64,000 bases of DNA from Macrostomum lignano. Taxonomy: Eukaryota. The notes beneath the pieces were generated by a model, which did no database searches, had not been told where the DNA came from, and was given only the letters and a program-made list of their open reading frames with translations. The DNA lies in the NCBI GenBank assembly GCA_002269645.1, contig NIVC01000860.1, forward strand, positions 248,001-312,000, given 5' to 3'. Positions 1 to 64,000 of this stretch are shown piece by piece. A program made the translations under genes and the position numbers. The first letter of the stretch is position 1, and each line of letters opens with the position of its first letter.

Positions 1-7367
<7,367 letters not shown>

Positions 7368-7935
7368 AATAACCAAAAAGTTATTTCAGAGTTGAAGCTT
7401 GAGCACAGTGTCACAGCTTTATTTACTCGAGTTGTTTTTGTGGTATTTTTTTATGGTATTACCAATTGAGCAAACAATCCACCCCCGTGATCAGGCCGTT
7501 TGCTCGTCTGTCTGAGAGTTTTATTTCGCCTCGTCGAGCTGTTGTGACGTAAAGGCTAAATTTACCACTCGAATTAAATGTCGTCTCAACACATGCTGCT
7601 ATGTATATGCACAGCTTGGCCTAGCAGTGTTTGCCTATTTCTACCAAGTGCTGCTTCGATTTTTTATTCATCTGAGCTGATAACGCGAGCTGTAGGCAAA
7701 AAAAAGCAAGCAAAGGATTTTTCTCTCGCCGCTGATAAAGCAGCATTTGTTATCGGCTGCACTAAGAAACAGCCGCCGTAGCTAGCCGAGCAATTTACAT
7801 GCAGTTGGCATACATGTAACATGAGCTTTAACTGTTCGTCTAAATCGTCTGGTATCGTAGCTTTTCAAGTAACTTACTGCAACTTTTCTGCCCCCCCCCC
7901 CAGCAAGGGAGATTAGTACAAATCAGAGTGTGTGC

Positions 7936-10900
7936 ACTTGACTTACTTAACTTACTGACTCAGCTGCAGGGGGCTCCGTGCATCCGGATTCAGCGAGGAG
8001 GCGTTACCGCCCATTCCGTTAACCTCTGGCAACCACGGGCAGCTGGTGCTGCGGTGTCGCGAGGAGAGATCCGGTGGTGCCGGTGTCCGTAGCGCGGTCC
8101 CCCTCTGGAGATTCCAGGAGGTGGAGTGGATGGTCGCTAGCCCGGTAGCCCGGTAGACGAGCTGGTAACTTATATTCTCGGGCCTGAAAATGTCGGAGAG
8201 GTCCGGGTTTGGGCCGAGGTAGGTGAGCCTTTCCTGAGTAAAAACGAGGCATTCACAGATGTAGTGCTCCGCATTCTCGACACCGGAGAGGCAGAATGGG
8301 CATTCCTCGCTACGGATATTTCCCTTTTCGCTACCGACTATGGCCTCTTGCCAGGCTTTTGCCACGTACCCGAGGGTAATGCTGGCCTTAAAGAGGTTGC
8401 AAAGGAGGCTGAGAAACCCGTCATTTTTAACTGCATCATGGAGGAAGGCAGGATAAATGTTTTCAGGTCCCGGTGACTTGAAGGGAGAGAAGGATTTTGC
8501 GGCGCGTGCCATCCTCTCTCTGGTAATGATGGTCGAAGCCAGGATCAGTACAGTTGTCCAGTGGGCCGGCCTAGCTGCGGTGCGGTACGTGGGAAAGAGC
8601 TCGTAAGCATGATGTCCAGCGATTCCCCGGGGTTCTCAGCGAGCCGGCCATCCGGTATTTTAATGACTGAGAGCTTTGAAATTTTGTTGAGGGTGAGAGC
8701 CTTGACCACGCGTGAAGTAGGGCGGGTGCCTTCTAACTCCGCGCAGCATTGGCGCCACTTGTCGGACTTGGCTTTCCTGGTTTCACGCTTAAAGTCGTGA
8801 ATCGCGTCGTGGTAAGCGGCCAGGTCAGCTGGTCCTTGCTCTTGCGAGCTTTCCGTTGGGGCACTTCGCATTGCGCCGGAGGGATCCAAGCGCCGGGTGC
8901 CACCAAGGGGAAAATTTATTGCCTTCGTAGGCAATTTTTCCGCGAAAGCCGTCCAGTCCGTGTTCCGGACGTTCTTTTTCCACAGGATGCTAGGCTTGGG
9001 ACAAGAGGATTGCAACCGAAAACGAACGAAGCGATGGTCAGACAGAGACTCCTCTTCGTCCCACACCCCCGGTCCTTGACCAGAGGAGCCAAACCATGGG
9101 AGACGAGGGTTACGTCGAGGGCCTCCATCCATCGCCCGTTGTCGAAGGTGGAGGTTTCACCAATATTCCAAAACTCAGTGTTGGTGGTGCAGATGTAAGC
9201 AAGGAGTTTCTTACCTCTGCTGTTGGAGATATTACTGCCCCAGTGGGTGTTTACGTTTAGAGCAGTAGTCCACGAGGGAGGTGAGGTTGGGGGGAACCAC
9301 GGGGCCATCGCCAGAGATATAAATCGAGGCGATGATGACCGTGCGGTTGGTGATTATGTGGCTGGAATGACACAGAGGTCTCTGTCAGAGAGGTCCGGTC
9401 TGTGCCAGGCTTTGAGATGGGTAGACACGAATATGGCTACTCTGGGGTTTTGGGGGTCCTGCAGACAATCAAAACCAGCAAGAATATTCGGAATCTTACC
9501 TTTTTTCGTCGAGGGCTCTTGAAGCAGGATGATGCCCGGTTTCACGAAGTTTGCCACCTGCATCGGGTTGGTAGAGGCCGCGATGCAGTGGTGCAAGTTA
9601 AGCTGCAGGATGTCCACTCCGGGGATTCCACGAGTGGTCCGCGCGCAGCTTCCTGCCGGCTCAGGGCGAGTTGCGCAAAAGGGCTGTTTTTTCTGCCTCG
9701 GCAATGGCTTCAGCCTCCAGTTCCATGGGCTCCTCCCGGTTGGTCTCCATAGTCGAGGGCGGGGCCGCCACCGGGGCGACATTCTCACTCTCGGCCCGGT
9801 TTTCCGAGGGGGGGGGGCGCAGTGGTGACACTAGGCTGGGGGTTGCTGCGGTTGTTGGCCTTGGCGGTGTCCAGCAGCTGCTTCGCGCGCTGAGTCAAAC
9901 CAGAGCGGATAGTGTTCAGACAAGGATTTCTTTATAACTAGAACCTTTTTCTAGAACCTTAGTTCTAGTTATAGAGAAATCATTGGTTCAGAGCGGGTTT
10001 CCGGCCCTTTCCACGTCCGCCTGTTGCTGCAGCTTTCGCGGCTTTTCCCCTAACGGGGTTCACGTCCTCGGAGGGGTGTGACGAACGGGGGCTTTTTTTC
10101 TAGATCGTTTCCGCCCTGCATAGCTTCCACTCGCCCACTTACGCTTCTCCGGGGGCGCAAGCTGAAGGTTTGAATCTGCATCAGCCCGACAGAGATTAAG
10201 GACATGTCCGGATAGAGGAGCATCCAGCTATCCAACAGTCCGAGGATTGCCGTGAAATGGTCCCCGCCCCCCTTGAAATGGTCACGTGAACTACGACGCC
10301 ATTGGATTAGTAGCCACTAGCAGGCGGCCCAGCTCGTCGGCTTTGGTGATGGAACTGCGAGCCGGAATCCAGGTACTGTGCCGGTGTGTCCGGGTTCGCT
10401 CGTCCTCCCTGTAGATGAACAGGTTTTCCAGCTCCGTACCCCAGTCGAAGGCTTTCAGCATCTCGACGAGCTGCTGCCCAGACTGGCTGTCGGCGGGCTG
10501 GATGTGAAGCGCGTGGTCCTCGACTTTCGTCTTTAGGACTTGGATGATGGTACTGCTCAAAGCCAACTTGACCAGGTGGAAATCCAACCTGCGCCAGACT
10601 TGGTCGAGCTGTTCAGCCGTAAGAGGCGTCTCCTGGCTTTGGATGATCAGGGCCGGTTGCCTCTTGGCCATTGCCGCATGGGTGCGCTTGGGCTTAGTGG
10701 TTTGGCCAGCACCCCCCGCTTTGGATCCCTCTGCGGCCGTGTGATTTACTACACTGGCAGAGGTCCCGCCACGGGAGAAGCCATCCGCATCAGGATCTTC
10801 GGCGGCACTTGACGCTTCCGACCGGCACGCGGGGTCCGCCCCCTTGTCGGATATCGGCCCCTCCGCGGGATTCGCTGAGTCACCGGCACCCTCCTCAGAG

Positions 10901-11779
10901 GCGGCAGAAGGGGCGGCTTTCGCACTCCTCCGTTCCTCCGCTTTGCGCTGGAGAAAGGCTTTGTAGCGAGAAATGCTACGGGCCTTCTTCTTAGAGGTCC
11001 GAGATCCGCTGCCCTGTTGTCCAGCCACTTCACCAGTGTCCTGAGTGGCGGCAGGGGCGCCTTTGAGAGTCACCGGAAGTTCCGGTGTTGCGAATGTCCG
11101 GCTGAGCCACGGTACCAACCTCAGATGGTGCTCCAGCAGCCTTAGGGACGCGTCGGAGGTAAATGAATACTCCATGAGGCGCTGAAAGGTGAATGGGGAC
11201 TAAAGGTGAGAAGCTGCTGGGCCTTAACCCCAAACCCAACAGCCAGCCAAAATAATAGCGGCTTAAGCCCTTACCGGCCCGACCGCTAGCAACCGGGAAA
11301 CTCCCCGGCTGAGCCCGGCTTGGAAAAAACAGAGGCCGAACCAAAGGTCCATCAGCGCGGTACTAAACTGGGGCCTTGAGGGAGGACAAAAGGCTGTCTT
11401 CGGAGCCTGCGAACTGGCCGCATACCCTGCTAAAGTTCAGAGGGTGATGCCTGCTCCCCAGAGTCGTGGCCAGAGGTACCTGATACGCACAGGTTCATCA
11501 TTAAGGAGCCCGTACCCAAAGCGGCCAAGACAGAAGCCAAAGCCACGGATGGGTTGCCGCCGCCGGAGCCCAGTCAGTCCAGCAGCCCCAGAGCTGCCTT
11601 GAACACATACGGGACTTGAACCCCTGGGTCGGCTTGTGAGTCCGCTTGTAGCTAGTTCTCCTGCCATTCCTGCAACCAGAATAGAGGGGGTGCAGGTGTG
11701 TAGGATCGCAGACCTTAGCTCGTAAGCCTGATCTGACTAGCTCATGCTACACAGGCGTGCTGAGCCCACCATTGCATGC
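7936..11779 (-). mobile_element. LOA/Lian-like non-LTR retrotransposon, copy A: both ends intact, RT/RNase H deleted
   Basis: 10-bp TSD GAGTGTGTGC at 7926-7935 and 11780-11789. (TAAG/TCAAG)-like 3' tail. ORF1 ~11175-9661, interrupted. APE endonuclease remnants (ILQLNLHHC..ILLQEP, SDHRFV). The start of RT (KSPGPENI) is joined directly to the C-terminal CPFC..H..C knuckle. Confidence 0.9.
11569..11779 (-). ncRNA. HDV-like self-cleaving ribozyme at 5' end of LINE copy A
   Basis: P1 GCAUGC/GUAUGU, P2 CCCAG/CUGGG, P3 GGG/CCC, L3 UUCAAGU, GU after P1, P4 GGCAGC/GCUGCU, J4/2 CUGA (putative catalytic C at 11577). G1 is the TSD-defined first base. Confidence 0.68.
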
Positions 11780-12434
11780 GAGTGTGTGCGTGCCGAGTGT
11801 GCAGAGTGGATGCAGAGTAGTCGCAGATTATATGCAAAGGGCCTGGCAGAGCATGTGTAGAGAGCAGGAAGAGTGACCATGCACTCTCTAAGTCATCAAA
11901 TTTTCTGTACAGGAAACGACCTTCAATTCAGCGGTAGACGCAGAGAGTCAAAGCCACTGTACACTCTACATGAGCGCGTGCATGAGTACAGTATTCGTGC
12001 ACTTTTATGTGCTGAGGAGACAGCAACGCTTTGAGTCACGGAGTAAAACCTAGTCCTGGCAAACGCATGCTATAATAAGGCGATGGTCGCATATAGGTTT
12101 GTTTGCATAAATTTAGCCTCTCTGTGCGCATTTTACGTCGAATGCTAAAAGAGATTCGACGGAGTACGTTTTTGTTCAACTTTTTTCTGCTACTTTGCTC
12201 ACCTTTTTTTTTCTGGGCACTTAATTCACAGGCTGTGCGTGCTCTGAGAGCGCGGTGGAAACAATAATGCTGCTACATCGTATAGTCGGGTTTACTGGCA
12301 TCTGGGAATGTCCCGCCAAGTTTCAGAGCAATTTAGTCAAGTTCTTCATCTGCCCGAAAAAAGTATTTAAAAAGTTTTTTTCAAGCTTCCCCCTGCTATA
12401 CTGCCTATACTACTCCATCTATCAAAGCGCAGAT

Positions 12435-13589
12435 ATGTGCAAAATTACGTGGGCTCAGCTCTTGCTAATTATACTGATTCTTCAATGTGTTACAGTCTGT
12501 TTTATTACCCTGCGATCGTGGCATCCAAGCTCAGATGGCAAAGTGCAACAGCACCATCCGACTGCAAGTGCAGAAGTTACAGCAGAAACTCCGTACAGTG
12601 ACGACTTCTCCGCCTCATTATCGCGCGTGCTGCAGCGACAGCGATCAAACAGCTGCTTGTACACATTCAACTCGAGTCTGCAGTTGCCGTTGCTGCGACT
12701 TGACTCCCCGGCCGAACTGGATCAGAAGAATCGAGTCCAGGCCGCAGCAGCCTGGCTGTGCTCGTCTGTTGACGTCGTGTTCGCCGCCTCGGTGCGCAAC
12801 GCCATGCGTGGCCTGCCCAGCACGGCCCAGCAGATGCAGCGCCTGGCCAAGAGCTTTCGCAGCGCCGCATTTGTCTTCGTAGAGAACGACAGTTCGGACG
12901 GGACGCGACGCTTCCTGGCCAACTGGCGCCGGAACGACTCCCGCGTGCACCTGCTGGGCTGCGGTGGCACGGACGCCCCGTGCCGCATGAACATCAGCTA
13001 CTCCTCCGGCCGCGCGCACCACCAGGGCTGGTCGATGCGGCGCAGTGAAGCGGAGAAAATCGAACGAAGCGTCGTGATGTCCGCCCTGAGGAACATCTAC
13101 CTGCGATACATTTACCGGCATTTCTACCAGCCTGATCGAGAGACGCTGCTGATCGTTGTTGATGCAGATATAACCTTCCATGCCTGGGATCTGGACGCTA
13201 TCCTGCAGGGCTTACACTACTTTCGTGACAGACCAACGCTACAGTCCGTGTGCGCGCACACTAGGCACTTTATCTACGGCTACGACATGTGTACTCTGGC
13301 GTTTCACCCCGACAAGGTCTTCTCCGAGGCCCCCAAGGAGTCGCCTGTGATTAAGAGCTTCCGCACCAAGTCACCACCGCCTGGCCTCCCTCCCGTGAAG
13401 GTATTCGGCTGCTTCCAGGCCGTCACCGCGTACCGGCTTAGCCACCTTGCCAAGAACCGGATTGAGTACGGACCAGCCCATGGAGAGAGCACCTGCGAGC
13501 ACCTGACACTGTCGAAGCAGCTGACTGAGAACTACCTAGATTTGAACATGAAGCTTTCTGTCTTCAAGCAGAACGAAGGCAACTACTAG
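12435..13589 (+). CDS. Intronless type II membrane GT-A glycosyltransferase, CAP59/GT69-like (384 aa)
   Basis: N-terminal TM (AQLLLIILILQCVTVCFITL); motifs FVENDSSDGT, MSALRNIYL, IVVDAD (DxD), VKVFGCFQAVTAY and CEH; AATAAA at ~13640. ATG 12435 is preferred over the upstream GTG. Confidence 0.75.
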   Translation: MCKITWAQLLLIILILQCVTVCFITLRSWHPSSDGKVQQHHPTASAEVTAETPYSDDFSASLSRVLQRQRSNSCLYTFNSSLQLPLLRLDSPAELDQKNRVQAAAAWLCSSVDVVFAASVRNAMRGLPSTAQQMQRLAKSFRSAAFVFVENDSSDGTRRFLANWRRNDSRVHLLGCGGTDAPCRMNISYSSGRAHHQGWSMRRSEAEKIERSVVMSALRNIYLRYIYRHFYQPDRETLLIVVDADITFHAWDLDAILQGLHYFRDRPTLQSVCAHTRHFIYGYDMCTLAFHPDKVFSEAPKESPVIKSFRTKSPPPGLPPVKVFGCFQAVTAYRLSHLAKNRIEYGPAHGESTCEHLTLSKQLTENYLDLNMKLSVFKQNEGNY

Positions 13590-13959
13590 CAGTTGTAATA
13601 GTATATGTAGTACAACGAAGACACGAACTATTAAATAACAATAAAAAACAAAAATTTTAATAATCTGCATTGCATGATTTTCTACGAGTAGCTACGATTT
13701 TCGTACGCTCCTTTTATACAATACTTTTATGCAGACGCATGCATATGCAGTGGCTTGATTTTTGGTACATGTGTGTACTTCTAACACTTAAAACTGATTA
13801 CAATCACACTGATTAAGACAAATAAAGTATTTCAGGCACCGTGGGATCTTTGCAATTGAGATCTTTACTTACTTACTTAGCTGCAGGGCTGTCCCGGAGG
13901 GGACACAGCGGGAAGGCGCGAGCGCCCATTCCGCTAGTCCCTGAACGGCCGACGCGTCG

Positions 13960-16900
13960 CTATGGACGGAGGGTTGGCGCCGCCCAGGGAGGTCCCCCAG
14001 TGTCGCCAGCAGCTATGGTGCTCTCTGGAAATGAGAGTTCAGCACTGCGGGTGGCCCGAAGGTAGCGGATGAGCTGATTAAAGTTTTTGGGTTTGCACGC
14101 TTCAGTAATAGATGTGTGTGGCCCGAGGTAAGTGAGTCTGGCCCGCGTGAAGGCGGGACAGATGCTGGCGAAATGCTCAGCGGTTTCGTCACCTGAGTTG
14201 CAGAAACTACAGGTGGCGTTGGTGGCGTTGCCTTGCAGGTACTGGTGCCTGGAGAAGCAGCCGTGACCAGAGAGGGTCATGGTGGCAGCCCGGATGTCTC
14301 TGCGCGAGAGGCGCAAGAGGAGCTTCCGAAGCTGGTGAGAGGGCTGAGGGACAGCGCCTCTGGATTGCCTGCAGGTAGTGCAGTTCGCCCAAGTCGAGCG
14401 GTGCTGGGTCCTGATCCACGCTTTGATGCGCGAGTCGATGACACAGCCAGGAATCGGGACAAGGGGTTCGGGACCGAGAGAGGAGCCGGAGGCACCAACT
14501 TTTGCAAGGGTGTCAGCCAACTCATTTCCTCGGATCCCCACATGCCCCGGAACCCACTTAAGGGTAATTTTGTTGGTGGAACCCAACACGTTCAGGAGTT
14601 TGATACAGTCGAGGACTGTAGCAGAGTTGGTGCTGCAGCCACTGATGGCGTGCAAGGCAGCTTGGCTGTCCGAATGGAAAATGATGTTCTTACCAGTAAC
14701 GCCAGTGGCGAGAAGCTCTGCAGTGCAGGAGCTTATGGCCAGAACTTTATTTTGGAAAACACTGGAGTTGACCCCAGTGTATTTATTGAGCGTGGGTAGC
14801 GATGACCCTCCCGTTCAGAAAGATTCCAACACCAAAGCCGGTGTTGGCTGACTGCTTAGAACCGTCGGTGTAGCAATGAAGCTCACCAAGGTTCCATTGG
14901 TCATTGATGTTATCGCGCGAGTCGATAGCTACGGAGTAGCGCTGTCTCAGGTTGAGCGTTGAGGCAATGCGATCGGTGAAGACGCGATTGGCCTGACACT
15001 CGTTGAGAAAGTTGAGGCACAGGTCGCTATGCGGGACAAGGTTCCGCTTAGCAGGTGCTCTCATGTAAATGAATTTGACGCCGGCATCAATTAGACGCCG
15101 CGTCGTTCTAGCCGCCTCACCCCTGACGAAGAGGTCAAGAGGCGGTAGATTAAGGAAGGCCCCATGCCAGCAAAGGGCGTGGACCTGGTGGCGTTGCAGA
15201 TGAGCCTACACGCTCTGCCTTGGATCGTGTTGAGCAGGTCTGCATGGCTTTTGACCTGGGTAGCGCTAACCCAGACAACCGAGGCGTACGTAATGGCAGG
15301 TCTAACTACGGAAGTATAGATCCACCAAAGCCGCTTTGGGGATAGACCCCAAGAAGTGCCAAGTGCTCGTCGGAGCTGGGCCAGGATGGCTGAGGCACGC
15401 TTGGCTTTTGCTTTCACGTGGAAGGACCAGTTGAGCCGGTGGTCAAGTGTGACCCCGAGACATCTGGTCTGGTGCGCGAAGGCAATATCTCTGCCGTAGA
15501 GCTGCAGAGGACGTATGTTCCAGCGTAGTCTGCTGGTAAACATAATGGCAACGGTTTTGGGCTCAGAGAGTTCCAGACCATTGTCATTGGCCCAGGATTC
15601 TGCTTTGCGGATAAAGCTCTGCATCAGATCCCTGAGCGTGCTGGGAGACGGTCCTGCCACAATGGCCGTGACGTCATCAGCATACCCGACTTTGAAGACG
15701 GGGTCGGGTCGGGAGTCACTCAGAAGAGCGTCCATGACCAGGTTCCAGAGCGTCGGGGTGAGGACTCCGCCTTGGGGTCCACCCTTACAGACTCTGGTGG
15801 AGGCAGTTTGCCCAAAAAGTTGGGCAGTGACCGTACGGTTGGAGATCATGTACATGATCCACCGTATGAGGGTAGCATGAGCTTTGCGATTTTGAAGGGC
15901 CCTCTGAAACGCTTCAAAGATAACGTTGTCGAAGGCGCCAACAATGTCACGAAAGAGAGCCAGGGCGTAACCGTCACCCAGTACCGCCCGTTCAATCTTC
16001 TCGACAATCGCATGCAGGGCGCTGTCGGTCGACCTCCCGGTACGGAAGGCGTGCTGATTATTGCTGAGGGGCATCGCTGTCAGCTCGCAGGAGAGCAGCC
16101 GCCAGAGAATAAGCCTCTCAGTGAGCTTAAGCATTGCTGACGTTAAGCTAATAGGCCGGAAGGCCTTGACGCTTTGGTAGTCACCCTTCCCAGGTTTGGG
16201 AATAAAGACTACCCGAGCTTCAGTTCAGCATTTGGGAACGTATCCCAGCTGGATAGAGGCCCGCATAAGATTGCGGGTGAGTCTCAGGAACGAGGGTATC
16301 TTGGCTGCTTCACGAAGGAGAACAGGGTAGATACCATCAGGTCCAGGAGATTTGAAGGGTTTGAAGGTTCTGACCGCACGAGCGGTTAGGTCTTCAGTGA
16401 CAATGCCCGCCGCTAGGGTGGCTCCATCCATCGAATGGTTGGGCTCCGGTCTAGCAGTAGGTATCCTCGGGAAGAATGTGCTAAGCATATGCTGAAGCAC
16501 TTCTTCAGGGTCTTTAGTAAGAGAGCCATCATCTTTTTTATCATGGCTAATTTGGACATTTTGTCCATTGTAAGGGCCTTGACAAGCCTAGAAGTAGGTC
16601 TGTCTTGATCCAATTCATTGCAGAATTGGCGCCACTTACATTCCTTGGCCTTGCGCACTTCAGATTTGAAATTGCGGGAGGCTTGCCGGAAAAGCTCCAT
16701 GTCCTCCGGGTTTCCGGTCTTCATGGCACGGCGATGAAGGCTTTTGGCCTTCCGCCTGAGTTTCCCCAGCTCCGGGCTCCACCACGGCGCCGAGGTCTTG
16801 CCTTTGTAGGCGCGAGCAGGACAAGCCGCTTCGTAGGCTTCAATAATGCAACCTGTCAGCGTCTCAGCCATATGATCCACATCCTCGCAGGTCTCAATCG

Positions 16901-17707
16901 GACGTAAGTCCGTGAGTTCCTGCAGGTGCAGATCAAGGGCAGCCTTGTAGGCCGCCCAATCAGTGTTGCGGATATTGCGTCTCCAAGTGATCAGACTGGG
17001 TTTTAGTGTCCGCGATGTTAAAGGCGATAAAGCAGTGGTCAGACAGGGAGGGCTCCTCAGATAAGACTCTCCACTCCTCAACTCTGTCAAAGAGTCTTGG
17101 GGTAACGAGTGTGGCGTCGAGGACCTCGGTCCATCTGCCATTATTAAAGGTAGCTCGTAGGAGTGCCTCCGCGGTTGCAGAGCATGAGGTTTGTGTTAGA
17201 GATGAGGGCCAGAAGCTCCTCTCCTCTAGTGTTGGTATCTTTGCTGCCCCAGTGCTTGTGGTGCGCGTTGAGGTCGCCCCCTAAGCACAGCTCAGCGTTC
17301 TGGGACTCGCAGTACTGCGCAAGGCACAGTAAACTCTCGGGAGCAGGGTCTCTGTCGCCTGGGATATAAACCGAGGCAACAAGACACGTACGCGGAGAGA
17401 AATTATTAGATTGGATGACACAAAGGTCTCCAACAGAGAGATCAGTCCTCAGCCAAGCCTGGAGATGGCTAGCAGCGAGGATAGCCGCTCTAGGGCGGCT
17501 GTTCCCCGGGCCACACACATAAAAATCAGAGTAGCCAGAGGGAATGTTGGGCAACTTACGGTTGCGCATCCAGGGTTCCTGGATCAGGATGAGGCCTGGC
17601 CTGTACAGCTCAGCAATCTTCATCAGATTTACTGACGCAGATACGCAATGCTGTAAATTTATTTGCAGACAGAATGTCGCTCCTTTGGCAGCGTGGAGCT
17701 TAGTCAT
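13960..17707 (-). pseudogene. ORF2 of LINE B (APE endonuclease, RT, RNase H, C-terminal CCHC) with several frameshifts
   Basis: CLQINLQHC/LIQEP/GGDLNAHH (APE); KSPGPDGI, GPQGGVLTP, GYADD, CLGVTLD (RT); YTDGS and WVPGHVGIRGNELAD (RNase H); CSFC..H...C. Split over at least 6 ORF pieces. Confidence 0.9.
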
Positions 17708-17746
17708 ACTGTATTAAATGCAATGTCTGGCTAGAGCCCAGGGCCA

Positions 17747-19255
17747 TCAAGGAGACTTGGACAACAGATCGTCCTCGTCCCAGGCCGCTGGGGCTTGACT
17801 GGGAGATGGGAGTTGGTCGACGTCCATGGCCTCCTCACCCCCACCGCCCCCCCCCCCAGCAGAGTCCTCAGGCTCCGACGACAGGATGGAGGAAGCTTCC
17901 TCATCTGCATCTTTACCTTCAGACCCCACCAGGGTGGCCGAGGAGAGCTCGGATTCCGAAGACCCGGCCTCGTCCTCAACTCCTTCTCCGACTGGCAGAT
18001 TTGGTTCCCGGGGCTTGGCCGGAGCCGTTACCGCGGTCGCCGAACTGCTGCTAGCAGAGGGGCGAGACACAGCTTTGGCTTTGGGATCGGCTTGCGCCTT
18101 TCCTTGGGCCTTAGACTGCGCCCCGCTCTTGCCGGAGATGCCGGGGTTGGCAGTAGCCTTCCCTTTGGCAGACTTTCCTCGGCGCATCTTGAGCTTGAGG
18201 GCACCCAGCTGGAAAGAGGATCCATTAGGGTACCGACTCGCCCAAGTGCTGGAAAGGCCGAGGACAAGTGAGTTGCCCGTCTCCCCCCTGCGGACTCGGC
18301 GGTGATACACCAGTCCACTAGCAGGGAGGTCGGGGTTCAGACGCAGTAGGACCCGGCGGATAACGTCTGGTCTAGCTGCGGTGCTCTTAGCAGGGACGAA
18401 AACCACATAGGGTATCGTCTTTGGACGCTGGCCCTCGCGAAGAAAAAGAGCTCCGCCAAGGTCAGCATCCAAAGAGACCGTCGGCAGCCGCTGGAGCAGC
18501 TGCCGAGCGTCCTCCTCGCTGCTAGGAGCAATAAGAACGAATGTGCTTCGCAGCACCATCCGCTCAATGCCGATGGAGATTCCCTCCTCGACAGTCAGCT
18601 CAATCAGATAGGAGTCAACAGCACTCCACACTTTTTGAAGCTGACCAGTGGTCCAGTCCTGGTCGCGACCTTGGATGATCACTCCCGGGATTTTGGCCTT
18701 GGCCTTCGCCGCAAAGGTAGCTCCCGAAGGAACCTCCTTGTTGGCAGTGGCCATTTGTTGCGCCGTGGTTTCGACCTCAGCAGCCGCGGCAGCAGCTCCA
18801 GGGAGCGCCGCCGCTGAACTACTGGAGCTTCCACCGGCCGGCCCGCCTGGTTGCCTTGGGACTCCAGTCGCTTCAGCATCCATGGTGGACGCCGCCGCTT
18901 TGGCCCCCGCAGCTTCCTTCTTGGCCTGCCTTTTGGCGCGTTGTTTAGCGCGTTTGCGCTCAAGCCGAGCCCACTGAGCTTCATCGGATCTGCCAGATTT
19001 GGCCGGTCCTTTAGGCTCAGAGCTCGCGGTTCCCTTAGATCCACCAGCGGAGCTGGCAGGTTTTTGGGTATTTTGAGTTTGGTAGCTCTGGTCGGATCTG
19101 CCAGCAGAGCCAGCCGGTCCTTCCTTTGCCACAGTTGAATCAGTCGGTTGGGATCTGCCAGCAGGGCCGGCCGGTCCTTCGGACTGAGGTCGGGGTTTAG
19201 AAGGGTCCCCGTCCCTAGAATTAGCTTGATTATCCATAGACGGCTCGAAGGCCAT
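17747..19255 (-). CDS. ORF1 of LINE B (gag-like, DUF4780-type, no zinc knuckle seen)
   Basis: Open ORF (first ATG 19255, upstream GTG 19312). The core ..VFVPAK..RVLLRLNPDLP resembles LOA/Lian ORF1 and is homologous to copy A ORF1 (WIPARS..LLVATNP). Confidence 0.8.
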   Translation of the reverse strand: MAFEPSMDNQANSRDGDPSKPRPQSEGPAGPAGRSQPTDSTVAKEGPAGSAGRSDQSYQTQNTQKPASSAGGSKGTASSEPKGPAKSGRSDEAQWARLERKRAKQRAKRQAKKEAAGAKAAASTMDAEATGVPRQPGGPAGGSSSSSAAALPGAAAAAAEVETTAQQMATANKEVPSGATFAAKAKAKIPGVIIQGRDQDWTTGQLQKVWSAVDSYLIELTVEEGISIGIERMVLRSTFVLIAPSSEEDARQLLQRLPTVSLDADLGGALFLREGQRPKTIPYVVFVPAKSTAARPDVIRRVLLRLNPDLPASGLVYHRRVRRGETGNSLVLGLSSTWASRYPNGSSFQLGALKLKMRRGKSAKGKATANPGISGKSGAQSKAQGKAQADPKAKAVSRPSASSSSATAVTAPAKPREPNLPVGEGVEDEAGSSESELSSATLVGSEGKDADEEASSILSSEPEDSAGGGGGGGEEAMDVDQLPSPSQAPAAWDEDDLLSKSP

Positions 19256-19533
19256 GATAAAAGGTTGGTGGGCTACCCTCAAAGGGGCGCGGTACCCACC
19301 CGGCCGCTCCACCTGACCGGGCAGTAGGCCAATAGAACCCTCAAGGCTGGCCCGACACCAGGAGGGGGACCGCTTGCGACCGGACTACTCCCCGGCCTTC
19401 CAGCCCATCGGCACGGTCAACACCTTAGGCATTAGAGAGTACGTTGAGCAGTACCATGGCGTGCAGGTCGGCGAGCCAGACCCGCATACCCAAATTCGGC
19501 CGAAGCCACTGGATAGGGTCGCCAGCGCCGGAG

Positions 19534-19773
19534 CCCAGTCTGTCCAGCAGCCCTAGGGTCTGCCTTGAACACACGCGGGGCCGAGTACCCTGGGTCGACT
19601 TGCGAGACAGCGTGGGGGGGGGTCTGCGGCTGCCGGAGGCAAATAGAGGCTGCAGACCTCCCACCAGCCTTGACCTGCCAAAGATAGGGGCAGGCGTGAA
19701 GCATCGCAGACCTTAGCCCAAAGGCCTGGTCTGTCTCATACTTCACTGGCATGCTGAATACGCCTTCGCGTGC
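19534..19773 (-). ncRNA. HDV-like self-cleaving ribozyme at 5' end of LINE copy B
   Basis: P1 GCACGCG/CGCGUGU (G1.U wobble), P2 CCCA/UGGG, P3 GGG/CCC, L3 UACUCGG, P1.1 AC/GU, P4 GGCAG/CUGCU, J4/2 CAGAC (putative catalytic C at 19542). G1 is the TSD-defined first base. Confidence 0.78.
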
Positions 19774-22768
19774 GCAATTGAGATCTGAAATTGATGCAAA
19801 AAATGCGTGAGCTATACTACGTGTATCTATAGGAGGACTCAAGGGGATCAGCTACATACGACCTTTCAAAGGGGAAACAGAGGTCTTATTCACTGGAAAA
19901 ACCACCTGCGGCGCTAAGCTACAATTAAAAATTCGCCTGCAGCGTCGAACTATACGCGTACGGTCTGTGGGATAAGATGGGTTTCGGCCTTTTCGGCTTC
20001 TTGGAGAGAAAGCCTTTGGGCCTCAGGTCTCAGAAATAAATCAATTAGAGTCCTGGCCCCCCACTACTGTCAGATCTTTAGCCCCGAGGTAGCTTGATCT
20101 GTGGCGAGCAGTCAGAAGGACAGCGAGAGAGACAAGCAGGGAATTTTTTGAAGGTAGAGATCAGCTAATCCGCAGATTAACTAACCCGCTACCACCAGCC
20201 CGTGCGTTCTGGCTCACCAAACCGGGACTTTCGAAATCGGGCTTCCGACTAGAAGGGGCTTTGCACTTACCTGCCAACTAGTGTCTTTTTGCTGTCAATC
20301 TCGAAGTCATAGCCGATGATAAGGGACAACTGCTGGGACTTATCGCATTGGCCATACATGTACAGAGGGGACTTGTGCAGGGGATTCTTGCAGTGGCGAG
20401 ACTATGGGGTAGCTACATGTACTATTACATTGCTAAATACGAAGAATTGTACTTTTGGCCTTCAACGCGCCAACCAGCCTCTCGTAGCGCTGATGATAAA
20501 CTAACTCGAACTTCGGAGACCGCATGATTCATTACCCGAGCCGCTTGGCGAACCTAGAGTGCACAGAGTACATCTCTGGCGCCGATTCTGCACTCTTGGC
20601 AATTTTGCTAACTGATTCGATAGATTGATCGATTGAGAACTGCCTTGCCATTAGTCCACTGTGACCGGCGCCTACTAGCTTAGCTACTCATCTGAGCCAT
20701 CGACGAACAAAGAAATAAAACCGATAAAAATAACTGTCAGATAACCTTCTCACTGAATCACTTCTCACTTCAGATTGAATTGGATTAATGAGACTACTAG
20801 CAGTATTATTGGATGATTTCTGCCTCAATAACAGCACTACTGAACAAAATGAGCAAAAGTGTGCGCCTAATCCAGCTACTGAAATAGGGGACAGATAAGG
20901 AATCACCCAATCAAGCAAGTCTAGGTAGCCTCTCACTCAACCAATCAATTCAACAGCCGGAGACCAGGTAATCCACAGTGACCGAATCGGCTTAGTGCTT
21001 CGCAGCTGGAGGCCCAGGATGTTGGTGTCACCGTCTTTGCTGATAGCAGGTGATGATCCTAACCTCGATGATTGATGCCGTCGACCGGGGGGATTTGTCC
21101 TTGATGATGAGGGGGTTGTCGCAATCCGGGGATCAAGAGACGACGGTCGTGACTCCGGAATAGGCCGAGTCCCATGAGTCCAAAGTACATAGGTTCCGAG
21201 GCGCCAAAAGTGAGTCCGAGCTAGCCAAAAACATCGGTTTATACGAGCCGTATAGACGCCAACTGGACCGCAATTTGTTATAATGGAACACTTCGACGCT
21301 GATTGGCGGAGCCGATTTGTTATAACTGACGTCGAATTTTCTGATTGACTAAGCTTGTTGCCACCCAAACTCACGTGACCAAAAGATCCTATCAGTTCCG
21401 TCGGGGCCATAAAAATACGCCAGGTGTCACCATAAATCACTCAAAATCGCTACATAATGACTTATGACCTTTCGCGTAGGATTTACAGAAATGAATGAGA
21501 AAATGTGCATTAGAAAGATCTTATAAGTAGAAGTAAAGATCTTATAAGTAGAAGGTGAAGATGGTGAAGAGAAATCGCTAATCGCTAATCCCAAAGTACT
21601 TTTAGGGGTACAACGCATAGCTGTCAGAGCTGTCAAACGCTTGAGTGAACACGAACAATAGGCCCGACCTCATAAATCTAATGGCCTGTCAAAAATGATT
21701 GAGAAAAAAGCATGCTGTCAGACAATCTGGCGCCAGCCTCAACACTGAGTGAGGCGCAGGTGTCTGTCAGACAAGCTCACAAGCAATGATTTATGACACC
21801 AAAAGTAGCGAAAACCGCGCCTATGTTATAATGACTACAGGTATATGGCAAAATGAATAGTAGGCCTATAGTTACAAAATCCTACTAGTACAAATTCTAA
21901 GAAAATTACGTAAAAAGAAGAAAAATGCCAATAGCCTGCTGTTAGCAGGCTACCAAGTTCTGAACCTATGTGCGAGCGTGAAATTTGGAAAAAAAAATGC
22001 GTCCTCATCATGTAGCTCGGAACGAAAAAACCTCTAAAATTGACAAATACCCCCTCTTGTCTTTGCTTAATGTAAGGAATTTAACAACACCGAAATTATT
22101 GTCTATCAAAAAAAGCGTGACTTTACAAGAGCGTAACGCCACAACGCCGAATATGATAGCATCGACTATATGAAGTGAAAATTCACTCTTGTAGTATAGC
22201 AATTAATGAGTAATCCCTTCAGTTGTCAATTTCTTTGTCCTTCATAAAATATAATAAGTCAAACAAACGATTTGAGTTAAAGTAGAATTTTGTATTTTGC
22301 TGTCTGAGCTTTTCTACATGTACGTAGTGTTACTCCTTGAATTTTTTGTTAAGCTTCGTACTTTGTACGGAAGTTCCAAGAAAAAAAAGCTGGGTGACAG
22401 CCATGAGTCGACTAAGTTCGTCTTTGGCAAAGCGCAATTTGTAGACCGTACGTAGGCGTAGTTTTAGGGAGTCTTAGGCCTGGTTAGTAATTGTAACAGT
22501 ATATTTTATTTAACAGTGGTTTGTTGTTTAAATAGTATTCGAACTAAATTATTAATCGACCAGTTCGAAATTCTGAACAGCAATCGAAAAAAGGACTCAC
22601 TCGGACAGTACATTTCTTTGGTTTGGTACTTAGTAATGGTATGCTTAGGCCTAGTAATATATTAATAATAATAACTGACTAGCTGGCGTATCAACAATGC
22701 TGACACATGTCAAGTGAAGTAGCTGGGGGCCAGGGCAGGGGCCAATCACCATATATTCAATTTTGTCA

Positions 22769-25700: not shown

Positions 25701-28700
25701 TCTACCTAAAGTTCAAGAAGTCCAACTATTTTTGTCATACCACATGGTATTTGACTTTCTAGTTGGTATTTTTCTGCTTTCTGCTTTTCTGCTTAATGCT
25801 TTTTTCTTTATTCTTTATTACTGTTACTGCTTTATGCTCTATTCCTAGTACTGGTCAGTTTGATATTTTTTGTTAATTTAATTTACCAGGCTCGCCCAGC
25901 AGCAGCTTTGGCAGCAGGCTTCTAGCCCAGCTATTCTGCTGTTTCGGCCTGGGTCACGTGCCCGACTATAACTTGGCAAGCAGCGCCGATGAAGAAGTGA
26001 TTGTGAATCATAGCAAGCTGTTGCCAGCTGAAGAGGATGAGGCTGCTGATCCCCAGTCTGAGTTAGTGAAGCTGGACATTAAAGAGCAGCCCGAGGACGA
26101 TCTGTTTGCCTTCTCCGATCTTGGCGGCCTGTTGCCGGCTGAGGTGCCAGACTTCAGTGGCAGAATTTGCGCCGTCATCGACTTGGACGAGACTCTGGTG
26201 CACAGCTCATTTCAGGTTGGCGATTGGTCATGCCCGTTTTGGTGACTCACACTGGTACATGTCATGAGTCATGTACACTGTGAATCGCAGGGTGCTGACC
26301 CGATTTTTAAAATTAATCTTAAAATTAATAGATTAATATATAATCTATTATAAGTGTATATACTTAGCAAAACTACTTTCTACTTTCAGTTTAGTAGCAA
26401 TGAAGAATACATAAGCTATTTTATGAGAATAAAGGCAGCTGAAATGACTTTGATAAGTCTAGAAATCAAGCTTGCAGAGGTAAACAGCTTGCTAGTCATA
26501 ATGTACATTAGCCAGTCCACTCAAATGTACATGGCAGCTTTAGGCTGGACCGCTGGAGCATCTGAGGAAGGTAATAAAATTGAGTAACGGGCAGGGGTAG
26601 AGGTTTAGTGTAGAGTCTGAGGGTTTAAGCTTGTCTCTTTATTGGTAAGAGCCAATAGATAAGTCTTGACTTAAAAAATAAATTAAAATGCTTCAGTTTT
26701 TCTTACTACTGAACTGAAAGTAGCTTACACGCACTTGTGCTGAGTGGCCCATCTAGTTCTTCTAGTATCTGGGTTAGGCTTAAGGTCTAATTCCATTTCT
26801 CCCGCACACCACTCTTTTGGAAACGGATTGGCAGTGCCCAGACGAGCCAGACTTCAGCATCGAAGTGGAAGTGGAAGGCGTGCAGCACCAGATCTACGTG
26901 TTGAAGCGGCCATTTGTCGATGAATTTCTTCATCGAGTCGGTCAGCTGTTCGAGTGCGTCCTGTTCACTGCCAGTATGGGAAAGGTGAGAGAAGTCGAAG
27001 GCTTTAATTAACTAGATTCCGTTAGTGTGGCTTTAAATTCTACTTATATAAAAGTACATTTTATACTTTTAGTACGCCGACCCCGTGTGCGACGCTCTGG
27101 ATCCGAACGGTTCCATTCATCATCGACTGTTTCGCGAGGCCTGCGTTTACCATTGTGACAGCTACGTGAAAGATTTGGCCACTCTGGGCAGGCCCGTTGA
27201 TCGATGCTTCATCATGGACAATTCGCCAGCCTCCTACATGTTCAATGTGGACAATGCGGTACGTGAACACGAGAGAATCCTCGTTGAAGGGATTTGTGTA
27301 GATGGGGTGTAGGGGAATCTTGAGTGATTTGCGTTCGGAAATTCCCGTGATTTGCGTAGGTAGATAAGGGAATCCCAACTAATTTGCGTAGGAGTGTAGG
27401 AAATCCCAAGTGATTTTTTTAGGGGACGTAGGGGAATCCCAAGTGATTTGTGTAGGTGGGCTGCAGGGGAATCCTAAGTGATTTGTGTAGTGGGGTGTAG
27501 GAGAATCCCAAGTGATTTGCGTAGGTGGGGTGTAGGGGAATCCCAAGTGATTTATGTAGGCTGATGGAGTAGAATCCCAAGTGATTTGTGTAGGTGGGAT
27601 GTAGGGAAATCCCAAGTGATTTATGTAGGCTGATGGAGTAGAATCCCAATTGATTTGTGTAGGTGGGATGTAGTGAAATCCCAAGTGATTTGCGTAGGCT
27701 GATGGAGTAGAATCCCAATTGATTTGTGTAGGCTGATGGAGGAGAATCCCAAGTGATTTGCGTAGGAGTGTAGGGAAATCCCAAGTGATTGTGTAGGTGG
27801 GGTGTAGGGGAATCCCAAGGGATTTGTGTAGGCTGATGGAGGAGAATCCCAAGTGATGTGTGTAGGTTGGGTGTAGGGGAATCCCAAGTGATGTGTGTAG
27901 GTTGGGTGTAAAGGAATCCCAAGGGATTTGTGTAGGTTGAGTGTAGGGGAATCCCAAGGGATTTGTGTAGGTTGAGTGTAGGGGAATCCCAAGTGATTTG
28001 TGTAGGTTGGGTGTAGGGGAATCCCAAGTGATTGTGTAGGTGGGGTGTAGGGAATCCCAAGTGATTTGTGTAGGTGGGGTGTAGGGAATCCCAAGTGATT
28101 TGTGTAGGTGGGGTGTAGGGAATCCCAAGTGATTTGTGTAGGTGGGGTGTAGGGAATCCCAAGTGATTTGTGTAGGGAGTGTAGGGGAATCCCAAGTGAT
28201 TTGTGTAGGTGGGGTGTAGGGAATCCCAAGTGATTTGTGTAGGTGGGGTGTAGGGAATCCCAAGTGATTTGTGTAGGGAGTGTAGGGGAATCCCAAGTGA
28301 TTTGTGTAGGTGGGGTGTAGGGAATCCCAAGTGATTTGTGTAGGTGGGGTGTAGGGAATCCCAAGTGATTTGTGTAGGTGGGATGTAGGGGAATCCCAAG
28401 TGATTTGTGTAGGTGGGATGTAGGGGAATCCCAAGTCATTTGTGTAAAGGGGGTGTTCCTTAGGCTAATGCTAAGGGGAACTGCCTTTAATTCCTGTGGT
28501 CCTGCGTCCCTCCGCAGATCCATGTCAACACCTGGACAGGCGAGCCTGATGACACGGAGCTTCGCGATCTGATTCCGTACTTGGATCGTCTGGCCAGTTC
28601 CGACTCGGTTGCGGAGTTCTTGCGCAACAATCCCTCGCCAACTGGCGCCCCAGTTTCTATGGCCAAATTTGCTGTTGCCATGCGGATGCATTCTTTTTCG

Positions 28701-31484: not shown

Positions 31485-31792
31485 AAATCACTTGGGATTC
31501 CCTACACCCCACCTACACAAATCACTTGGGATTCCCCTACACTCCCTACACAAATCACTTGGGATTCCCTACACCCCACCTACACAAATCACTTGGGATT
31601 CCCTACACCCCACCTACACAAATCACTTGGGATTCCCCTACACTCCCTACACAAATCACTTGGGATTCCCTACACCCCACCTACACAAATCACTTGGGAT
31701 TCCCTACACCCCACCTACACAAATCACTTGGGATTCCCTACACCCCACCTACACAAATCACTTGGGATTCCCTACACCCCACCTACACAATC
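31485..31792. repeat. Inverted copy of the CTDSP intron-4 minisatellite (9 units)
   Basis: Reverse complement of 28030-28337 with the same order of unit variants. Confidence 0.92.
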
Positions 31793-32375
31793 AATATACT
31801 AGTGCTAAAATTATTTTTTATAGTTGCCACTTCATTATTACAACTTCATCATGTTATCCTTGCGTAGAAAGCTTAATTGAACTGCATTTTGCTTAATAAG
31901 AAATTTTTTGCTTTTCTAAAAAGTCACTGCATTCTTTTACTAAACATTGCCTTGTAACTTTCAAGCAACTTATGAAACTTTCAACTTTGAGAATTTTTGA
32001 AACGAAAGGGCTTCTATTTGTTTTGAAATGCATGTTTTGAAGTACAGCTCATACAGCCTAGGGTGTGTGTGTGCGTGTGTGTGAGTTTTTTATACGTTTT
32101 CCGAATCGTAATTCTTGTTATTTATTTATAGCTCGAAGCTTAATAGAAAAAAATAATTACAGGGCTGTGGGGGGCAGCCACCAGACTCCTAGGACTTGGT
32201 GATATCTAATTGTGTAAAATTTAAATTTATCGCCATCATCAAGCACATTGTTGAGTGAAAAAAATGCAGTTTGGATAAATTCAATTCAATTACAAAAGAA
32301 AAATATTTGGGTCAATTTGACTTTCAGACATTTTCACTGACCCTCTTACAGACATGTTGGCAGCATCCAGAGAAT

Positions 32376-49513: not shown

Positions 49514-52500
49514 TTACAGCATCACAGGGGCCAGCTGGTGCCGCTTCCTGGAAGTCCACACCAGCTCGGAGCGGACCCGGACCTCGCCTTCCAGCGCCTC
49601 GTCGGCGGGTCCGTGACGCCGGGCCTCCGCCCAGCAGGCGGCCGTCATCAGCTCGGAGCTCAGCCAGACTCGGCCTGGCCAGGCGGGGCTGAGCTGCAGC
49701 GCCGCCGTTGCCCCGGCAACCAGCCGGGCCAGACTCTGCCTGGTCGAGGCCGGCTCCGCCAAGACGCCGTCCTGCAGTTGGCGAACTTGGCAGGCCAGCG
49801 ACTCCGGCCGGGCGTGCCGGCAGCCGCTGCCGCCGCCGTTGCCTCCGACGGACGCCAGCAAGCCGGTGGCCACGGCGCACTCGTCGCACTGGCCGGCCGT
49901 CAGCACGACGGTCTCAGTGGCGAGTCCGGCCTCGCTTCCGCCGCTGCCACCGTCGGTCGCCACCGCGGTCACGAGCTGCAGCAGCTCCTCGCAGCTGCCG
50001 CCGCCGCCACCCGGCCGATGGCTGTGCAGCTCCAGCAGCGGCTGTCGAAGTTGAACGCCGAATTCGAAGCCGGACTTGCTGGCGGTTGCTAGGCGGCATC
50101 GATCCGCTGTGTCTGGCAGCCGGGTGAGCACCAGAGTGCAGGCCGGGGTTCGAGTCTCCAGCGCTGCCGGCCGGTAGACTCGCAGGCTGAAGCCTTCGAC
50201 CAGCTCAGCTGAGCAGCCGCATCGCCTGTTGGTCTTCGCTGCTGTTTTGCTCGCCAAAGCCGTCGCGGATTCGTCGTCGACCAGCTGTCGGTGACAGCAG
50301 AGCCGGTGCGAGCTGTCGCTGCCGATCTCGAATTCGGTGAACTGCCTGGCGCAGCCGGCCTGCCGGTGAACGCCAGCCAGCGCGACCTCCTCCAGCACGC
50401 TGCTCTGCGCGGGTCCGGGGCGCGCAGTTTGCTGGATGCGCGCTTGGCTGGATGAAGCCAGCCGGAGCTGCTGGGCGGAGCAGCCATCCAGTTCCACGCG
50501 AAGTGTCGAAGCCTCCATGCTGCTGGGCATCTCAGAGGCGGCCACAGCCGATGTGGCTGAGGACAACTCGGCTGGTGCGGAGATCAGAGGCTGCACGGAA
50601 GTCGCGGGACCTTCGTGTGCGATGCCGCAGACGGCTCTCGATGTTGACGCCGCTGCGGTGCTCTCCTGGATGCCGGGAATCTGCTGACAGCGTGCGGCGG
50701 CTTCAGCTGACGGACCCGCCACGGTGCAGGCTGCTGTCATCTCCGTCTCCAGCGCGCGACGTCGCTTTGAAGTCGGCGTCTTCAGTGTCGACAGCCGACA
50801 AGCCGCAATCGCTGCTGGCTGCTCCGTCTGTGAAGCGGCGGTGGAGTCAGCCTGGCACAATGAGCAGGCTGCGCAGCAGGCGGTGCCGGTCTCGGCTATA
50901 GCGGCGTCGTGAGCACCGCTGCCGAGGCCCAGCGCCGACTCCTCCAGCAGGGCAGACGCACGTAACGCCGTCGCTCCCGATTTTATCAGCGAATTTTTTT
51001 TCGACTCAAACAGCCGACGCTGGCAGACGGTCAGGCAGGCGGTGCAGACGCCGATTTGAGTCGCGTGGTCAATCGACAAAACCTGGCGCTGTTGCGACGA
51101 CCCCGCGAGGGCAGCGGATTCGGTCCGAGCGACTCCTGGAGGCGGTCCGCAGACGGAGACTTCGAAACGGCTGTCGAGCTCTGCGGCTTCGTCGTCAAGT
51201 CCGACCAGTGGCTTCCCCAGGCAGGCGGACTGGCGGGCGGAGCGCTGCTGCAGACAGGCCGCGGTGCCGACTGCCAGCTTGCCAGCAGCGCAGACGGCGG
51301 TGGCCTCCAGGCTGGTGTCGGTGCGCAGCTGCTGGGAGATCCTCGACGCGGCGACGCCCTGAACGGCGTGGCGAAGCGGCCTGAGCGGATGCAAATTCGC
51401 GGCGACGAAAGCCGCCCCCGATGTGCTTGGCGGCAGGGAATTAGTTGAGTCCTGCGACCGCAGATCCGCGTCAGTCTCCGCTGAGGTGACACCCTGGCTG
51501 ATCAATCGGAAGGCTCGGTCGAAATTGTTGACGTCGAACTCGGAGCTGTTGACGCTCGCGGAGCCGGAGGCGCCGCGGCTGCTGTAGGTTGTCGGGAAGC
51601 TGGAATCGTCTATCAGCGCCAAATTCTTGTCGTCGTCGTCAGTGGGTTTCGCTGCATCGGCCACGACGGCGCTCAGTAGAAGCGTTGGTCCCGCCTGGTT
51701 GGCCGCCCGAGGCTCGTGGCTGCAGTTGCTGCACAGCGCGTTCGCCGCTGCCGCCGCCGACGGCTGCTCCTCAAAGCTGGTCTCCATCTCGGTGAACGAG
51801 ATGAACTCACCAGCTGCCGCCTCGGTGGCCGCGGCTCTGGTGGCTTCGGCCAGCAGCCGAACGGCCTGTTGCCACAGGCGGCGCGTTAGCTGCGACGTCG
51901 GTCCCTGCGGCCGCGCCTGCGGCTGCTGCTGCTGCTGCTGTTGCAGCTGCAGTCGAAGCTGCAGCCGCCGCAGTCGCAGGAACGGACTCACTGTTGAGTT
52001 CAAACTCCAACGAGCCGAGTTGACGCGCTCGTCAGTGAATGACGACACGAGACTGCTGCTGCTGCTGCCGCCGCTGCCGCTGCTGTCGCTGCTGCTTACG
52101 GAACTGCTGCTGCCGCTGCTGCTAGGAATTGGCATTCGGCCGCTGCCATTGCTGTTGCTGCCCGACACCATCTGGTAGCAGCAGCCGGTCCCGGCTTGGC
52201 CCGCCACCGTCGCCAGTGGCAGCCGCTTCACCAGGCGGCGCACCCGCCAGCTGCCGCCCAGACTGCAGACGAGATCGGCAAGTCGACGCGCGCTGGCTGG
52301 GAAGTCGCCGCCGGACTCGTTCATCAGCACCTCGACTGGGACGGAGACGCCAGTTTTGCTTTGCTGCTGTTGCTGTTGCAGATTCTGGTGCTGCAGTTCT
52401 GCTTGCTTCTGGTAGCGATGATCGACCAGGATTGAGCAGCCGCAGGTGGTCTCAATGTCGGCAAGCAGACGGTCCACATTGGGGTCAGTAGAGAGCAGCT

Positions 52501-52690: not shown

Positions 52691-52885
52691 CTGCAAGGTA
52701 CGTATTGAGCCTACGAATTGTGACCTACAGATAACATGTGCGTCTTAACCAGATTGAATTTACGTGTACCAACTTAAGCTAGTAAGGTAACACTTGTGTT
52801 CACTATAGTTAGTCTTTGTATCTAATGCATGTAAATAGTCTCAGTATCAAATAGATAGTCCGTGCATCTAACAGCAGATAGCCTT

Positions 52886-62220: not shown

Positions 62221-64000
<1,780 letters not shown>

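Follow-up and report, generated by a model that had tools for sequence, protein, structure and literature searches.

A candidate HDV-like ribozyme at the first base of two LINEs in the flatworm Macrostomum lignano

Two LINEs on the minus strand of a 64,000-nt stretch of Macrostomum lignano DNA (contig NIVC01000860.1, positions 248,001 to 312,000; hereafter the window) begin exactly at G1 of a sequence that can form an HDV-like fold in both copies, with the critical bases conserved. Comparison of the two sequences leads us to regard it as likely that the 5′ ends of these elements, termed A and B, are genuine self-cleaving HDV-like ribozymes, active now or until recently, that set the 5′ end of the LINE. 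That these two decayed copies are themselves fast cleavers is put forward with rather less confidence. The exact TSD ends, the start of A/B homology at G1, the preserved fold and the low background of chance matches uphold the claim of an earlier sequence-only reading that the LINE begins exactly at the G1 of the ribozyme and, together with the L3 and J4/2 bases kept in both copies, they support the HDV-like assignment.

Results

Two LINE insertions that share their first base

Element A was delimited by its TSD, Pfam domains and frame analysis. Its parts, all on the minus strand, are as follows.

13865–19773, minus: element A, a LINE of 5909 bp
19774–19786, minus: 5′ copy of the 13-bp TSD, AGATCTCAATTGC, adjoining G1 (19773)
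17747–19312, minus: ORF1, 521 aa, without a Pfam domain
17144–17707, minus: APE-type endonuclease part of ORF2 (Pfam)
15091–16134, minus: reverse transcriptase (RT) part of ORF2 (Pfam)
13960–14655, minus: RNase H part of ORF2 (Pfam)
13865–13879, minus: 3′ tail, (TAAG)3TAA
13852–13864, minus: 3′ copy of the 13-bp TSD, AGATCTCAATTGC, directly after the tail

Element B is a second, independent insertion in the same orientation.

7936–11779, minus: element B, a divergent sister LINE of 3844 bp with both termini intact
11780–11789, minus: 5′ copy of the 10-bp TSD, GCACACACTC, adjoining G11779
7926–7935, minus: 3′ copy of the 10-bp TSD, GCACACACTC

Both elements bear the hallmarks of LINE insertion, namely a TSD, a simple-repeat tail at the 3′ end (of a degenerate TAAG type in B) and APE and RT domains. 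The two copies of the TSD of element A are identical (19786–19774 and 13864–13852), and G19773 is the first base inside it, as had been proposed from the sequence. The further proposal of two subfamilies is borne out by element B, which starts at the homologous G11779 and has a TSD of its own. The description of these LINEs as full-length is accurate for their termini and fails for their coding regions. Element A is complete at its ends and dead in its coding capacity, its ORF2 being broken up among three frames by stops and frameshifts; element B, otherwise colinear with A, has an internal deletion of ~2 kb in which most of the RT and RNase H was lost.

In element A, a separate ORF1 is followed by APE, RT and RNase H domains (Pfam), an arrangement common to several non-LTR clades. 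Membership of the LOA clade is possible on this domain order. The closest relatives of the element A RT, at 30–66% identity, are proteins of metagenome assemblies and of arthropod genomes (insects, Artemia). Within the species, the ORF1 of element A matches portions of UniRef entries from Macrostomum lignano at 97–98% identity, and its ORF1 and RT pieces together match stretches of such entries at 92–98%. Protein searches with ORF1 for further copies yielded only three UniRef entries of M. lignano, none of them accompanied by DNA, and an exact look-up of ORF1 returned no record.

When element A was compared with the window by blastn, there was one other match to its 5′ end, at 11763–11536 on the same strand, and searches of the window for further copies with both blastn and nhmmer found A and B only. 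The two elements are old relatives, judging from their sequences: their ORF1 proteins are 29% identical and their endonuclease pieces ~50%, and their coding DNA can be aligned only in short patches near 70% identity. Similarity between them begins at G1, with none upstream. The best nucleotide match is the ribozyme core, 79% identical over 116 nt, followed by P1 with the 5′ part of J1/2, 76% identical over 72 nt. Since the core is so much better preserved than ORF1 or the patchily alignable coding DNA, the 5′ region is under constraint. J1/2 (19757–19690) holds much of the conservation, and similarity at the nucleotide level extends ~55 nt past the 3′ strand of P2 (19533–19480 in A and 11568–11511 in B, minus strand).

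A proposed nested double pseudoknot in both elements

The proposed fold of element A comprises the following parts.

19534–19773, minus: candidate HDV-like ribozyme, 240 nt (3′ edge at 19527 with the possible P2 extension)
19767–19773, minus: P1 5′ strand, GCACGCG; cleavage predicted 5′ of G19773
19571–19577, minus: P1 3′ strand, CGCGUGU; 7 bp, the pair next to the cleavage site being G1·U
19595–19766, minus: J1/2 peripheral domain, 172 nt
19591–19594, minus: P2 5′ strand, CCCA; possible extension GUCG, 19599–19596
19534–19537, minus: P2 3′ strand, UGGG; possible extension CGGC, 19530–19527
19578–19590, minus: P3, GGG/CCC (19590–19588 with 19580–19578), around L3
19581–19587, minus: L3, UACUCGG, 7 nt
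19569–19570 (J1/4) with L3, minus: P1.1, pairs G19570–C19585 and U19569–A19586
19544–19568, minus: P4 hairpin
19538–19542, minus: J4/2, CAGAC, with candidate catalytic C19542

The corresponding parts of element B are these.

11569–11779, minus: candidate HDV-like ribozyme, 211 nt
11779–11774 with 11610–11605, minus: P1, 6 bp, including G11779·U11605
11628–11624 with 11573–11569, minus: P2, 5 bp, CCCAG/CUGGG
11623–11621 with 11613–11611, minus: P3, GGG/CCC
11620–11614, minus: L3, UUCAAGU
11577–11574, minus: J4/2, CUGA, with candidate catalytic C11577

Standard pairs suffice for every helix of element A, in the order P1–J1/2–P2–P3–L3–P3′–P1′–P1.1–P4–J4/2–P2′, and the coordinates and pairings given in the sequence-only reading for P1, P2, P3, L3, a two-pair P1.1, P4 and J4/2 CAGAC are all present. 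The weak points of this copy are a P2 of only 4 bp, unless the GUCG/CGGC extension is real, and one extra base in J4/2. The register of element B, with its 5-bp P2, was considered for element A as well and rejected, as P3 would be left with two pairs. In element B, P1.1 consists of one Watson–Crick pair and a U–U, and the 6-bp P1 contains two G·U pairs. Neither copy carries a substitution at a family-critical base.

Where A and B differ, the changes agree with the HDV-like fold, as far as two sequences can tell. Both elements have the G1·U wobble at the base of P1 and the TSD boundary at G1, with a P1 of 7 bp in A and 6 bp in B. Pair 4 of P1 is C–G in A and U–A in B, both sides having changed, and pair 5 is G–C in A and G·U in B. 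Relative to A, element B has an extra G after CCCA and one C fewer before the P1 3′ strand; together these produce a one-base register shift that gives a 5-bp P2, a 6-bp P1 and CUGA as J4/2, leaving P3 unchanged as GGG/CCC and A7 of P1 unpaired. Four of the seven L3 bases differ, and those that are kept are precisely U1, C3 and G6. In J4/2, the A/U difference falls at the N of C-N-R-A, and in P4 the distal part alone differs, with pairing kept in both copies. Three hairpins in J1/2 are common to A and B and contain 3 compensatory pairs; in element A, a further GC-rich hairpin occupies columns 122–155 of the alignment, which are a gap in B. As only two copies are compared, the covariation support amounts to a handful of pairs: one double compensatory change and one G–C to G·U change in P1, the register shift, and the three pairs in J1/2.

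Pairing between J1/2 and the conserved stretch 3′ of P2 was also sought. The only such pairing that both elements allow prolongs P2 for a short distance past a small internal loop (GUCG/CGGC in A, GCCG/CGGC in B). This possible extension would explain the conservation just 3′ of UGGG, and it covers the first ~7 of the ~55 conserved nucleotides only.

Folding energies and chance matches

The J1/2 domain of element A is strongly structured (−77.8 kcal/mol). P1 is absent from the unconstrained MFE fold, which is expected for a pseudoknot closed over a 172-nt insert and is not counted against the proposed structure. Forcing P1 and P3 to form costs 0.4 kcal/mol in element A (−106.9 against −107.3) and 4.3 kcal/mol in element B, in each case with P2 and P1.1 not yet counted.

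The background was assessed with a descriptor whose 5′ part required G1·U, a P1 of 6–7 bp, J1/2 of at most 250 nt, a 3-bp P3 and a 7-nt L3 of the form U.C..G., and whose 3′ part required a G after P1, C-N-R-A with 0–1 additional nucleotides, and a P2 of at least 4 bp adjoining P3. Each of the 128,000 starts on both strands of the window was scanned. The cores of A and B alone were matched, at 19773 and 11779, with 11835 as an alternative P1 to the same core as 11779. Without the L3 letters, 19 of the 128,000 starts match. Dinucleotide shuffles of each 5′ region (30,000 per region), anchored at base 1, gave no strict and 7–8 relaxed matches, the anchor being the TSD boundary, which does not depend on the fold. 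For a given start, the fold would thus arise by chance at a rate below 1/30,000 (strict) or ~1/4,000 (relaxed), figures that are somewhat optimistic because the descriptor was composed after A and B had been seen, so that the true odds are less extreme.

Database searches and distant relatives

No Rfam family matched anywhere in the window at gathering thresholds, and at E ≤ 10 the HDV-type families (RF00094, RF01787, RF01788 and RF02682) gave no match in 19300–20000. The matches obtained there at E ≤ 10 were chance miRNA- and sRNA-like hits on the GC-rich J1/2 hairpin alone. The Rfam miss is a weak negative, as a 172-nt J1/2 and a divergent core could account for it. Core patterns likewise had 0 matches in each of the JGI metagenomes (two patterns), GTDB genomes and IMG/VR, and a literature search for a ribozyme in Macrostomum turned up no paper.

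Six loci with distantly related RTs (L001–L006; RT 36–41% identical to that of element A) were taken from ENA assemblies. The descriptor matched none of the six. Two of them, with LINEs of eukaryotes, carry compact candidate HDV-like ribozymes on the strand of ORF1 and upstream of it, at 3480–3577 (plus) in L005 and 4068–4144 (plus) in L006. Their Rfam matches are sub-threshold (32.3 and 26.1 bits to RF02682; 28.7 bits to RF01787), and among the six loci matches to HDV families are confined to these two, whose RTs are 36–37% identical to that of element A. In L005, the candidate lies ~1 kb upstream of ORF1 and its L3 has the same U.C..G. pattern as in A and B; the ORF1 itself (DUF4780) has no similarity to the ORF1 of element A. 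These loci serve as context: LINEs with such a domain order carry HDV-like candidates, which are not homologues of the A/B core. L006 also has two sub-threshold matches to type-I hammerheads, at 13071–13114 (minus) and 13677–13720 (plus) and 25.6 bits each, lying in inverted orientation ~600 bp apart on the same ENA contig.

Other features of the window

A third LINE family occupies 62293–64000 (minus), with its 5′ end outside the window; its RT/RNase H DNA is ~65% identical to that of element A, and a 5′-truncated fragment of this family lies at 54595–54987 (plus). The family and element B (8026–8128) have 3′ UTRs with 88% identity, so the 3′ UTR is a module common across families.

A CLCA-like host gene was recognised at 2563–7376 (minus), with CLCA N-terminal pieces at 7376–7128 and 6297–5965 and a VWA domain at 3501–2563. 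Element B ends ~560 bp before the first recognisable coding piece of this gene, on the same strand. Long tandem arrays of 8-nt and 16-nt units (3373 to ~5900) lie inside the gene. Between A and B there is a 444-aa open frame (12255–13589, plus) with a weak match, below the Pfam cut-off, to a CAP59-type mannosyltransferase. Four apparently intronless ecdysteroid-kinase-like paralogues (PF02958; 32271–40589, three plus and one minus) have ~300-nt blocks in common at 79–97% identity. Arrays of 34–35-nt repeats at 28029–28337 and 31485–31793 form a 309-nt inverted pair, 100% complementary, that flanks a 3.1-kb segment with a 318-aa ORF without a Pfam match; the pair might represent either a foldback-type element or an artefact of assembly. 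Finally, a 1060-aa open frame (49514–52696, minus; 66% GC, rich in GCT/CAG repeats, without a Pfam domain) might represent a coding gene of low complexity or an ORF that arose by chance within repeats.

Discussion

HDV-like ribozymes are known at the first base of several non-LTR elements, including R2, R4, Dong, baggins, RTE and L1Tc (PMC3774820, PMC6765202, PMC3185411, PMC4035085). By comparison with these, the ribozyme of elements A and B is probably a further example of a known 5′-trimming strategy and not a new kind. In the mechanism that we envisage, the element would be transcribed within a longer RNA, which would fold into the nested double pseudoknot of P1, P1.1, P2, P3 and P4 with the multi-hairpin J1/2 between P1 and P2. 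The J4/2 cytosine (C19542 in A, C11577 in B) would then catalyse scission directly 5′ of G1 and so yield an element RNA beginning exactly at G1. Complete target-primed reverse transcription of such an RNA would give an insertion with G1 first, adjoining the TSD. Catalysis by the A and B 5′ regions is something we infer from the fold and its conserved bases, and an upstream source of the transcript, such as the host read-through transcripts from which these elements had been suggested to be released, is proposed by analogy with the known elements. Upstream of element A, no host gene could be recognised on the minus strand, and the nearest recognisable one, the CLCA-like gene, is downstream of element B. 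The folded 5′ end might have a second role in translation or stability.

Among the closest parallels are the LINE 5′-end ribozymes of a 2011 study (cited in PMC3774820, PMC6765202), which resemble A and B in occupying the first bases of the element, in cleaving at its own 5′ end with release from a co-transcript proposed, and in belonging to APE-type LINEs, apparently without a recognised promoter. A and B differ from them in the macrostomid flatworm host, in a core without an Rfam match and in a J1/2 of 145–172 nt. The silkmoth R2 ribozymes also form a double pseudoknot with a long J1/2, a P1 of 6–7 bp and conserved L3 C and G and J4/2 C (PMC3774820). However, R2 inserts site-specifically into 28S rDNA by means of a restriction-like endonuclease, and its ribozyme cleavage often takes place upstream, within 28S, planarian R2 being among the lineages predicted to do so (PMC3774820), whereas A and B are dispersed, APE-type and predicted to cleave at their own first base. 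P4, present in A and B, is absent from the silkmoth R2 forms (PMC3774820). The mosquito ribozyme drz-Agam-2 likewise has a long structured region that lies between P1 and P2, but it consists of a single P1.2 helix in place of several hairpins (PMC4908430). In Trypanosoma cruzi, L1Tc carries an HDV-like ribozyme at base 1 of an APE-type LINE (Pr77/L1TcRz), and its internally deleted, non-autonomous partner NARTc parallels element B; unlike A and B, L1TcRz is compact (77 nt), has demonstrated promoter activity and functions where transcription is polycistronic (PMC3185411, PMC3383444). Among flatworms, non-LTR retrotransposons of Schistosoma mansoni also employ self-cleaving ribozymes in their retrotransposition cycle, of a different class, as they are twister variants (PMC8501958).

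The sequence-only reading had taken the 172-nt J1/2 as the sign of an unusual and possibly undescribed lineage. The argument from length fails, because J1/2 loops of 216–498 nt are already known in silkmoth R2 (PMC3774820), as is the structured domain of drz-Agam-2 (PMC4908430). What stands of the suggestion that the lineage may be undescribed is that no Rfam family matched and no paper was found. A bolder version, in which A and B represent an undescribed large HDV-like subclass, is one that we consider quite unlikely. Here, the conserved three-hairpin J1/2 would be an obligatory second module (a promoter, a translation platform or a protein-binding site), and the subclass, missed by present covariance models, might occur widely among the LINEs of Macrostomum, and perhaps also among those of other flatworms.

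An altogether different explanation is that conservation of the 5′ region reflects an internal promoter for RNA polymerase II and/or a structured 5′ UTR acting in translation or packaging. Transcription would then start at G1, and the HDV-like fold would be coincidental. An internal promoter likewise predicts precise common 5′ ends and strong 5′ conservation, and it would sit well with conservation in J1/2 (19757–19690) and ~55 nt past P2, both dispensable for the catalytic core, as well as with the lack of a recognised host gene upstream and of an Rfam match. However, it does not predict that the strand at base 1 should find its pairing partner ~195 nt downstream, nor that changes should be compensatory or shift the register, nor that consensus bases should be retained in L3 and J4/2; and the coincidence that it invokes has the chance of below 1/30,000 (strict) or ~1/4,000 (relaxed) found with the shuffles. 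We therefore hold this explanation to be very improbable. Promoter and ribozyme could also be combined, as they are in L1Tc Pr77/L1TcRz (PMC3383444), in a module that acts at the DNA level as an internal promoter and at the RNA level as a ribozyme, with J1/2 conserved for a function in promotion or translation. Such a module would account for the conserved J1/2, whose hairpins covary in elements with ORF1 proteins only 29% identical, and for the ~55 bases 3′ of P2. Conservation of J1/2 is, however, equally accounted for by a role in folding or activation, since a structured J1/2 can activate a ribozyme (PMC4908430); in the silkmoth S. cynthia, deletion of the ~250-nt R2 portion of J1/2 left no detectable self-cleavage (PMC3774820). 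We regard the dual module as a tentative idea, possible by analogy and somewhat on the doubtful side.

It is rather unlikely, in our judgement, that the ribozyme is a relic, once active in the lineage and now without cleavage in the window copies or perhaps in the whole family. Both copies are coding-dead and may have acquired inactivating changes, and the weaknesses of their folds point the same way, namely the 4-bp P2 and extra J4/2 base of A and the weak P1.1 and two G·U pairs in the 6-bp P1 of B. Against this stands the fact that no family-critical base has been hit in either. In R2 ribozymes, loss of the conserved L3 C and G accompanies inactivity, whereas P1 stems of 6–7 bp, mismatched at the top, are usual and tolerated (PMC3774820). 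The reading that we prefer, in which a self-cleaving HDV-like ribozyme sets the 5′ end of these LINEs, leaves the known picture of how HDV-like ribozymes work unchanged.

If the ribozyme is active, the retrotransposons that set their 5′ ends by self-cleavage would be joined by those of a free-living flatworm, with a further lineage of APE-type LINEs. Forms with a large J1/2 would then be seen to escape descriptor and Rfam searches, and G1 would provide a base-exact marker of full-length copies for the annotation of repeats in this difficult genome. With working transgenesis (PMC5730564), M. lignano could be a practical animal for asking in vivo whether LINE RNAs that are uncapped after ribozyme processing undergo translation and retrotransposition.
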